DNA from: Octopus sinensis
Lineage: Eukaryota
Length of the DNA stretch: 28,596 bases
Reading direction: 5' to 3'
NCBI RefSeq assembly: GCF_006345805.1
Contig: NW_021827535.1
Coordinates: forward strand, 1 to 28,596
Shown here: positions 4,998 through 5,751 of the stretch, one piece after another
Layout: each line of letters starts with the position of its first letter
Position numbering within the stretch: position 1 is the stretch's first letter
Made by a program: the position numbers and the translations under genes
Notes under the pieces: model-generated
The model's input: only the letters and a program-made list of their open reading frames with translations
Databases searched by the model: none
Told to the model about the DNA's origin: nothing

Positions 4998-5120
4998 TAT
5001 ATGGACTCCCCAAAGGCGATAAGTACTGGCTTAGATATTATTGAAAAACACAGTCTCAAAACTCTTGTTCATTTTTTTTTTTTGCCTAAATCCGAAACTA
5101 TTAATTAATCCATAGAATAA

Positions 5121-5714
5121 GGCGGCGAGCTGGTAGAAACGTTAGCACGCCGGGCGAAATGCTTAGTGGTATTTCGTCTGCGGTTACGTTCTGAGTTCAA
5201 ATTCCGCCGAGGTCGACTTTGCCTTTCAGGGGTCGATTAAATAAGTACCATTTACGCACTGGGGTCGATATAATCGACTTAATCCGTTTGTCTGTCTGTC
5301 CTTGTTTGTCCTCTCTGTGTTTAGCCCCTTGTGGGTAGTAAAGAAATAGGTATTTCGTCTACCGCTACGTTCTGAGTTCAAATTCCGCCGAGGTCGACTT
5401 TGCCTTTCATCCTTTCGGGGTCGATTAAATAAGTACCAGTTACATACTGGGGTCGATATAATCGACTTACTCCGTTTGTCTCTCCTTGTTTGTCCTCTCT
5501 GTGTTTAGCCCCTTGTGGGTTGTAAAGAAATAGGTATTTCGCCTGTCGCGTCGTTCTGCGTTCAAATTCTGCCGAGGCTGACTTTGTCTTTCATCATTTC
5601 GGAGTCAATAAAATAAGTACTAGTTGAACACTGGGGAAGGGGTGGAGGGGTCGATGTCATCGACTCATCCCCACCTCCCCCAAGCTGCCCTTGTGGCGAA
5701 AATTTGAAATAATT
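5121..5714 (+). mobile_element. SINE family B concatemer: one head plus 3 units of about 182 bp, flanked by a 13-bp TSD
   Basis: Head ggcggcgagctgg at 5121. Units start at ggtatttcg at 5168, 5349 and 5533. TTAATCCATAGAA occurs at 5105-5117 and 5717-5729. The core gtcgactttgcctttcatcctttcggggtcgat..aagtacc resembles the Deu/Nin SINE domain (from memory). Confidence 0.9.
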
Positions 5715-5751
5715 ACTTAATCCATAGAAGCAGTATTAAATCGATTTCAAA

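Follow-up and report, generated by a model that had tools for sequence, protein, structure and literature searches.

A SINE array in Octopus sinensis that may have grown by repeated insertion into the head of its own family

Here we describe a tandem array derived from a short interspersed element (SINE) in the genome of Octopus sinensis. It lies in a stretch of 28,596 nucleotides on contig NW_021827535.1 that was analysed as a whole and is referred to below as the window. The array consists of one SINE head and three body units inside a single target-site duplication (TSD), and the units belong to two different subfamilies. Its arrangement, together with that of related arrays elsewhere in the genome, is consistent with stepwise building on a resident SINE by targeted re-insertion into the head of the same family, a reading to which we give an even chance.

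Two SINE arrays and the family they belong to

The array spans positions 5118–5716 on the forward strand. It starts with a head of 50 nt (5118–5167) that is of the young 'A' type (..GCCGGGCGAAATGCTTAGT) and has 2 mismatches to the A-type head consensus. Units 1 (5168–5348, forward) and 2 (5349–5532, forward) both belong to the A1 lineage and are 93% and 97% identical, respectively, to the 184-nt unit consensus. Unit 1 carries a short internal deletion and the T-type tail GGGTAGTAAAGAAATA; unit 2 begins at head position 51 (GGTATTTCG) and has the tail GGGTTGTAAAGAAATA. Unit 3 (5533–5716, forward) has the body and tail of another subfamily, 'B2', with B2 diagnostic sites from position 10, the sequence gttgaacact and a private insertion of about 13 nt. 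Its tail, ...cccttgtggcgaaaatttgaaataatta, is unlike those of units 1 and 2. The units are joined as ...AAAGAAATA|GGTATTTCG at 5348|5349 and again at 5532|5533, where GGTATTTCG corresponds to position 51 of the full-length element, directly after the ...GCTTAGT of the head. A 17-mer spanning the junction occurs five times in the window at ≤2 mismatches, compared with 0.01 expected occurrences, and Tandem Repeats Finder (TRF) reports a period of 184 with 2.6 copies over 5168–5636.

The TSD is the 13-mer TTAATCCATAGAA, with exact forward-strand copies at 5105–5117 and 5717–5729. These are its only two exact copies in the window, none of 100 shuffled sequences gave such a match, and the similarity extends to 17 of 18 bases. 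Our analysis thus bears out the initial annotation of this DNA as far as the layout is concerned: it had described one head, three units joined at the same point and one TSD around them, and had concluded from the differing tails and the gttgaacact of unit 3 that simple local duplication is insufficient. Unit 3 may well be the original insertion, that is, a resident SINE of another subfamily on which the rest was built.

The description of the head as tRNA-derived fared less well. ARAGORN found no tRNA in the window, and Rfam found none in 5000–6000 at E≤1. The minimum-free-energy fold of the head is a long hairpin rather than a cloverleaf. By eye, we noticed a box-B-like sequence, GAGTTCAAATTCC, at unit positions 26–38 and box-A-like sequences, TAGCACGCCGG and GCTTAGCGG, in the head.

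A second array, composed of a head and five A units, is located at 18509–19509 on the forward strand (TRF period 185, 4.6 copies). Its units 1–4 have T-type tails and are joined at head position 51, and the fifth has the C-type tail GGGCAATAAAGAAATA. This last tail abuts a resident SINE of a third subfamily (19510–19731, forward) that ends in (ATT)n and was entered at head position 18 (AGAATCGTTAGC..), a junction we call J2. Unit 1 of the second array harbors a 32-bp internal duplication (TRF 18625–18702), and its tail joins the next unit without the first bases of GGTATTTCG.

The search covered the genome of Octopus sinensis (2,719,151,902 bases in 13,516 contigs, 2.72 Gb). From it, a sample of 324 kb was read, made up of 20 regions of 10 kb around array matches, 30 regions of 3 kb around unit 3 matches and the window itself; statements that reach beyond this sample are based on genome counts and match tables. 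The sample contained about 175 SINE segments, among them 99 full-length A units in 49 arrays. Sampled loci carry labels such as L005, L009 or L042.

The A element consists of the 50-nt head (consensus TAAGGCGGCGAGCTGGCAGAAACGTTAGCACGCCGGGCGAAATGCTTAGC) and a 184-nt body, which terminates where free copies reach their TSDs (for example in L016, with a TSD of 19–20 bp). Two lineages can be told apart by their tails. The T-type tail GGGTAGTAAAGAAATA defines A1 and the C-type tail GGGCAATAAAGAAATA defines A0, and the units of the two types differ at six linked sites. Both tails are covered by the pattern CCTTGTGGG(T/C)A(G/A)TAAAGAAATA, which would be expected at the 3' end of the partner long interspersed element (LINE). 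Divergence from the own consensus, counted here and below at non-CpG positions, has a mean of 5.25% in C-type and 4.0% in T-type units (p=0.018). Other subfamilies, such as B1 (...ccttgtgcctagagtagaaaagaat) and B2 (...gaaataatta(ATT)n), agree with the A element over the head and the initial ~119 nt of the body but have different tails; further subfamilies exist. B1-like terminal units are heterogeneous, which inflates their consensus divergences, and these were used qualitatively only. The family is short, non-coding and abundant (more than 12,000 first-look candidates, and 75,530 T-type tails genome-wide), and its copies are flanked by TSDs of 7–20 bp with varying sequences, as is characteristic of SINEs. 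The body (..CCTTTCATCCTTTCGGGGTCGATAAAATAAGTACC..) may resemble the CORE motif.

A fixed junction and its target

The junction of the window trimer is very common in the genome. The exact 22-mer GTAAAGAAATA|GGTATTTCGTC, which leads from the tail to head position 51, occurs 27,469 times, and its reversed control does not occur at all. The ordinary head-to-body 22-mer AAATGCTTAGC|GGTATTTCGTC is found 23,804 times and thus is less frequent than the tail junction. The first 100 junctions listed on contig 1 represent 79 loci, 10 of which contain 2–7 exact junctions at a spacing of 182–188 bp. In the sample, one to five or more A units follow a single head; an array has its head at the 5' end only and its units start at head position 51, which is the organization of a SINE-derived tandem array. 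Whole arrays are enclosed by single TSDs of 13–20 bp. For example, the five units of L005 lie in one TSD, and the array TSDs of L010, L011, L012, L017, L020 and L032 have 14–20 bp with 0–2 mismatches. The tails of internal units are complete, and their end point is exactly that at which free copies reach their TSDs. The initial annotation had proposed to tabulate the junction positions, and these proved to be fixed genome-wide rather than randomly scattered. With one fixed junction at head position 51 and a second at position 18, the joins within the head fall at defined positions, as in site-specific retrotransposition.

Some loci in the sample depart from this simple layout. At L015 (4442–9628), a 5-kb cluster contains A units in both orientations with irregular joins (a tail joined to unit position 75, partial units and facing heads); it is rearranged and satellite-like, unlike the simple arrays. 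At L045 (2359–2720), the TSD GGTATGCATG holds a 71-nt fragment of the 3' end of an A unit, 49 nt of A-rich unrelated sequence and a full A monomer. Several templates seem to have contributed to this composite, or else it was copied by transduction from a compound source.

The choice of junction depends on the tail type. In the sample, the position-51 junction follows 72 of 83 T-type tails and none of 16 C-type tails (p=1e-11), and the position-18 junction (|AGAAACGTTAGC) follows 6 of 16 C-type tails and 1 of 83 T-type tails. Genome-wide, GGTAT comes after 40,788 of 75,530 T-type tails (54%) versus 1,105 of 23,212 C-type tails (4.8%). The second array in the window obeys both rules, with four T-type junctions at position 51 and then a C-type junction at position 18. 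The SINEs that were entered at position 18 come from different subfamilies, so this junction is a hot spot and not an amplified composite.

A preference for the same sequence can be observed outside the family. Where T-type tails lie beside non-SINE DNA, the flank is at most one mismatch from GGTAT in 5 of 8 cases, against a background of 1.6% (p=5e-8); beside C-type tails, a GGTAT-like flank was found in 0 of 10. The TSDs of L045 (GGTATGCATG) and L005 (TGTATTA) include the GGTAT-like motif, which must therefore have been present in the target before insertion. Within the family, all 16 resident-type units at array ends start exactly with GGTATTT, compared with 6 of 24 comparable free monomers (p=1.5e-6), and the common GGCATTT variant is found in none of the 16. 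Between tail and TSD, L018 and L009 have additional bases, GG or GGTATT.., that are not from the target. Plain microhomology priming of the A tail at both hot spots was considered and rejected: it would merge the shared bases, and both copies of them are present.

How might such an array arise by stepwise insertion? In a first step, a B2 SINE, now unit 3 with its tail, would have inserted and created the 13-bp TSD. Later, the RNA of a younger A1 element (the 50-nt head and a 184-nt body ending in GGGTAGTAAAGAAATA) would have served as template for reverse transcription starting at a nick in the resident head, at position 51. With the nick directly 5' of GGTATTT, the A1 tail would come to abut position 51. 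Units 1 and 2 could stem from one two-unit RNA or from two one-unit events. In a third step, the 5' part of the cDNA, comprising the head and the first body bases, would join in register with the homologous resident sequence upstream. Because of this in-register joining, neither a second head nor a visible new TSD would be expected. Each event would add exactly 184 bp per unit and restore an intact head with the same target, so that arrays would grow at their 5' side. We infer target-primed reverse transcription (TPRT) as the underlying chemistry, with homology-assisted joining of the 5' end through a heteroduplex. A staggered nick combined with such joining predicts a particular succession of parts: an old head, an old stretch of TSD length, a young body with its tail and an old unit.

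The specificity could reside in the RNA. Array-derived RNAs that extend by a few bases into the following unit (...AAAGAAAUAGGUAUUU, GGUAUUU) would be able to anneal to the nicked bottom strand at positions 51–57, and priming by such a read-through 3' end would give the exact junction whatever the precise nick. The unit consensus does not contain a run of four T, so RNA polymerase III (Pol III) should read through array junctions. Since only copies at such junctions would yield read-through RNAs, the T-type lineage would be tied to the junction and the process would feed itself. A sequence-specific endonuclease of the partner LINE is an alternative source of specificity, and the data fit both equally. 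Only tentatively do we extend the annealing scheme to a self-homing SINE, in which array-derived RNA with the GGUAUUU end would anneal to any nicked head of the family or to GGTAT-like DNA and add headless in-register units; this would amount to a retrotransposition-driven passage from dispersed SINEs to satellite-like DNA. It is likewise possible, if rather doubtful, that the two-base change in the tail marks the self-homing lineage, with the sister tail type using head position 18, AGAAAC.

The junction also coincides with a predicted structure in the RNA. A hairpin of 13 bp at positions 35–62 (loop UAGC, dG -16 kcal/mol, z -3.15) receives its 5' arm and loop from the head (5118–5167 in the window), and the junction falls at the 3' edge of the loop. 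The GAAAUA of the A tail is predicted to be able to replace the 5' arm. Folded as DNA, the same sequence is no better than shuffles (z -1.0). A DNA cruciform at the target was rejected on this ground. The idea that the loop is an anticodon loop, with the junction at the 37/38 intron position, was dropped as unsupported, ARAGORN and Rfam both being negative.

A junction at a predicted RNA hairpin, not a DNA hairpin, hints at a step at the RNA level and counts against stepwise insertion. It speaks for an origin in one event, for which the initial annotation had already named template jumping of the reverse transcriptase (RT). Here, a single TPRT reaction would copy a B2 RNA up to position 51 and then jump to the 3' ends of A1 RNAs. 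In variants of this scheme, position 51 would mark a pause of the enzyme or an RNA 5' end that arose when the hairpin loop was cleaved, or the RNAs would have been ligated beforehand; the TSD would date the whole array. In line with a single event are the position of the junction at the loop edge and the exchangeable 5' arm, the single TSD around whole arrays, the rather good preservation of array TSDs, the young A-type head in most arrays and the composite at L045, which resembles a multi-template product in one TSD. However, the preference for GGTAT at non-SINE sites is a property of a DNA target and not of an RNA donor, and the ages of the units, presented in the next section, do not agree with a single event either. 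Overall, we regard an origin in one event as quite improbable.

Ages and relatedness of the units

Eight sampled arrays end in a B2 unit. In these, the A units have a mean divergence of 3.8% and the B2 terminal units of 8.9% (Wilcoxon p=0.039), with the terminal unit older in 6 of the 8. For example, units 1, 2 and 3 of the window trimer diverge by 1.3%, 3.1% and 7.4% (unit 3 measured against the B2 consensus), and those of L042 by 0.6%, 0.6% and 10.1%. A fresh copy of an old, transcribed element could in principle look old, but would predict a parent at ~95% identity or more. The best non-self genome match of unit 3 has 82% identity (~89% over aligned bases, owing to the private insertion), and those of the terminal units of L009 and L042 have 88% and 84–85%. 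Lacking close parents, these terminal units were not recently copied from an old transcribed element. RNA editing as a source of the old appearance of unit 3 was rejected as well, since its differences from the B2 consensus, judged by eye, show a mixed spectrum and not A-to-G changes.

The heads provide a second indication. Six B2-terminal arrays have a full head, which shows 1–3 mismatches to the A-type head in the window, L009 and L027 and 5–6 mismatches in L042, L044 and L032. Array heads are thus either young or as old as the last unit, in roughly equal numbers. The head of L044 shows the diagnostic bases of B2. Unit 1 opens with ~14 nt of B2 type in L044 and L032, and with a strongly diverged stretch in L042, where 3 of the first 20 nt are mismatched; beyond this start, it is of A type in all three and has diverged little. 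This is the succession of parts that a staggered nick with homology-assisted joining predicts. We infer that the near-equal numbers of old and young heads reflect segregation or repair of the heteroduplex.

All parts of a one-event chimera should have the same age. Instead, terminal units are 2–3 times more diverged than the A units of the same array, all three tested terminal units are without a close relative in the genome, and half of the informative arrays keep an old head beside young bodies, with an old-type start of unit 1 in L044 and L032 and, less clearly, in L042. Template jumping in one event is therefore disfavoured.

Most of these features could also be explained by conversion of an existing locus. 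A chimeric RNA or cDNA of A1 and resident sequence, template-switched on the resident's own transcript, would recombine into its parent locus or serve as template when a break there is repaired, so that A units would be gained with no further integration. This would account for the old, privately mutated terminal units, for the unchanged TSD, for the occurrence of heads of either age and for a junction position that depends on RNA structure. However, cDNA recombination specific to the locus would be needed tens of thousands of times, as the number of exact junctions demands, and the process seems too inefficient for this. It also leaves unexplained the GGTAT-like non-SINE targets and the position-18 hot spot that the sister tail type uses in several subfamilies. 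We think it unlikely that the arrays arose in this way.

Homologous crossover or gene conversion is contradicted by the place at which the subfamily changes. A and B2 bodies differ at positions 10, 12, 14, 78, 94–96, 110 and 120. The B2 terminal unit is already of B2 type at position 10, the first diagnostic site, in 7 of 8 such arrays; the variant seen in the eighth is also present in free B2 copies. The switch therefore lies ≤9 nt from position 51, which is too short for homologous crossover, and crossover or conversion would place the switch points anywhere within the 119 shared bases.

Plain local tandem duplication of part of one SINE, by replication slippage or unequal sister exchange, has in its favour that the complete head comes first and the complete tail last, as in published arrays, and that recently duplicated neighbours are present in some arrays. 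In the window, however, the units come from two subfamilies with differing tails. BLAST gives 87% identity between units 1 and 2, whereas unit 2 has dozens of dispersed genome copies at 96–97%. Unit 1 has 2 non-CpG variants, neither of them in common with unit 2, and no private variants are shared. Being nearer to dispersed copies than to unit 1, and in the absence of shared private variants, unit 2 is not a duplicate of unit 1, and the window array is left unexplained by this process. The initial annotation had held that greater similarity within an array than to dispersed copies would speak against self-targeting, and here the opposite was found. In the sample as a whole, the mean distance of 6.3% within arrays is close to the 7.6% between arrays, and the complete tails of internal units, which end as in free copies, do not suggest duplication of an internal segment either. 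As a general rule, local derivation of units by homogenisation fails; it holds in a minority, namely L018, L015, L016 and a locus at 30.02 Mb of contig C1. At the latter (C1:30,020,861–30,022,528), ten successive junctions combine the otherwise rare C-type tail with GGTAT at a spacing of 185 bp, which looks like a long homogeneous array from local satellite-type amplification. Local duplication by unequal exchange thus adds units in some arrays, besides other routes, but as the origin of the arrays it is very improbable.

A related possibility is that an array formed once in a master copy and spread as multi-unit Pol III transcripts, which were then resized by unequal crossing-over or slippage. 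We consider this unlikely, and the same holds for the derivation of the window trimer from such an array by copying or recombination. Several observations do point in this direction. The unit has no run of four T, which makes read-through by Pol III possible. Variant sharing reaches 28% in within-array pairs compared with 14% in random pairs, and some neighbours are recent duplicates, identical in their variants (L018 units 3–4, L015 and L016). No age gradient is visible in T-type arrays with a C-type unit at their end, and there are long homogeneous arrays such as the one on contig C1. However, spread from a master copy alone cannot join old residents to A units with a switch inside 9 nt, given that terminal units are drawn from at least four tail subfamilies. 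In the window, unit 3 is without a close genome relative, so the trimer as a whole was not amplified, and units 1 and 2 are not mutual duplicates. Multi-unit propagation acts in addition to stepwise insertion.

Stepwise insertion into resident heads has difficulties of its own, and the predicted RNA hairpin and the excess of shared variants within arrays are only two of them. The terminal units of L028 and L032 are not older than the A unit of their array. In the arrays composed of A units only (n=9), the 3'-most C-type unit is no more diverged than the units upstream (p=0.55), and these arrays may have moved as preformed multimers or multi-unit RNAs. More generally, no clear age gradient is discernible among units of the same family. 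The TSDs of arrays have 6 mismatches in 58 bp compared with 10 in 48 bp for B2 monomers (p ~0.2; the numbers are few and ascertainment-biased). Array TSDs thus look no older than those of young elements, a tendency that runs counter to stepwise insertion but is not significant. Arrays of at least two units seem commoner than independent hits on heads predict, according to a rough estimate with heads uncounted; such an excess would have to be explained by multi-unit RNAs, by a preference for A-type heads or by local duplication. A LINE 3' end with an A-type tail was not found in the 324-kb sample, and an allelic or haplotig copy of the window locus was not among the scored matches, its left flank itself being a high-copy repeat.

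Taken together, the self-targeting proposed by the initial annotation, in which the TSD stems from the last-positioned copy, further copies enter its head at a fixed site and homology settles the 5' end, survives all tests that were run, although by indirect support. The junction is fixed, the terminal units are often of another subfamily, and divergence and closest relatives suggest that the target unit is older than the units added to it. The expected gradient of age with position is present in B2-terminal arrays and not clearly so among units of the same family.

A few further features of the window and the sample deserve mention. A 5'-truncated B2-like SINE was recognized by sequence comparison at 5755–5897 on the reverse strand, outside the array and 26 bp downstream of its TSD. 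It forms an inverted repeat with unit 3, and this inverted pair is the reason for a weak, sub-threshold Rfam match to MIR7533 on both strands at 5583–5867. At 921–972, within a (CTAT)n microsatellite (633–1206), a stretch of 50 nt matches only the 3' end of the A unit, with the C-type tail ...GGCCAATAAAGAAAC. This stretch could be what remains of a copy with a severe 5' truncation, or could belong to a related element as its 3' end; it is uninformative on the partner LINE. Another high-copy repeat of ~470 bp is located at ~4083–4550 (15,361 first-look candidates, 85–88% identity). At many loci, a match to its last ~170 bp is found on the other strand at a distance of a few hundred bp, as would be expected of an element with long inverted ends. 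TRF also reported two stretches of imperfect triplet repeats, one GTG/GGT-rich at 7416–9665 (~2.2 kb) and one CAA/CAG/CAC-rich at 12657–13755 (~1.1 kb), which may be low-complexity coding sequence or degenerate microsatellites. Finally, SINEs of other subfamilies are joined head-to-tail via (ATT)n, with (ATT)n on either side, in L045, L048, L049, L050 and L034. The arrangement points to a partner LINE that may insert into (ATT)n/(TAA)n microsatellites, among them the tails left by earlier copies, a habit that would resemble that of Dong/R4-type elements.

Comparison with known systems

SINE-derived tandem arrays have been described only recently, in squamates in 2023 and in bivalves in 2024, and were ascribed to unequal recombination without a test of the mechanism. 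The octopus genome offers tens of thousands of TSD-flanked, datable arrays that are able to separate mechanisms. If stepwise insertion into resident heads is the correct explanation, the A1 SINE would be a non-autonomous retroposon with target specificity for its own kind, and a concrete route would be at hand by which 184-bp tandem repeats are born from dispersed SINEs. It would also call for caution in the annotation of cephalopod repeats and in the dating of SINEs, since one apparent copy may mix parts of very different age. The arrays further bear on the long-standing question of how the 5' end is joined in TPRT where homology exists, and existing octopus assemblies suffice to test it.

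The octopus SINEs OR1 and OR2 are listed as CORE-SINEs with a tRNA-related head and a conserved central domain (Ohshima and Okada 1994, as cited in PMC4758252 and PMC4824008). Our literature search found no description of arrays of octopus SINEs, OR1 and OR2 included.

In squamates, SINE-derived satellites (sSats) consist of tandem units of partial SINEs; unequal recombination was given as their origin, and the arrays become more homogeneous as they lengthen (Vassetzky et al. 2023, PMC10702118). Like the octopus arrays, they have a longer terminal unit that reaches the SINE terminus, are found at many independent loci and have units of ~150–180 bp. In contrast, the octopus arrays are mostly short (1–7 junctions), dispersed and flanked by TSDs, with the exact junction present at least 27,469 times, and their units are heterogeneous, retain complete tails and in many cases adjoin older units that belong to other subfamilies.

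Arrays of the form TSD1-(SINE)n-TSD1 have been reported from the blood clam Scapharca broughtonii, where ~3% of high-scoring SINE copies are in tandem or palindromic arrays and unequal recombination was proposed (PMC11481361). Clam and octopus, both molluscs, share the single TSD, the full head on the first unit and later units that are without the same part of the head. However, the internal units of the clam are 3'-truncated in the tail and highly similar to each other, whereas octopus tails are complete and the units are of mixed subfamily and age. Unlike in the clam, over half of the tails of one lineage, the T-type, are at the junction. From both the squamate and the clam arrays, those of the octopus differ further by a second site-specific junction and by their larger scale.

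For multimers of full-length SINEs, the usual explanation is that each new copy inserts into the A-rich tail of the one before it. With their (ATT)n joins, the octopus SINEs of other types resemble this pattern, but the A1 lineage enters the head instead. In the jerboa, a large share of the Dip/B1 family is present in full-length head-to-tail multimers of up to eight, for which no mechanism is given where they are cited in PMC10702118.

With template-switch chimeras, the octopus arrays have in common that the joins are at a defined end within one TSD. Such chimeras (of the U6-L1 type, or formed by end-to-end jumping of the R2 RT) contain head-to-tail RNA joins made in one event from parts of equal age. 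In the octopus, the 3' part is older and parentless.

The nearest functional analogue may be the site-specific non-LTR (non-long-terminal-repeat) elements. R2 with its internally deleted SIDE derivatives and the Tx1-clade elements, which use small-RNA genes, integrate at one nucleotide of a multicopy target. Like these, the octopus SINE appears to pile up copies at one site. It would differ from them in that its target is its own head and not a host gene, that its specificity is partial, extending to GGTAT-like sites, and that its 5' end would be absorbed by homology, so that headless tandem units result.

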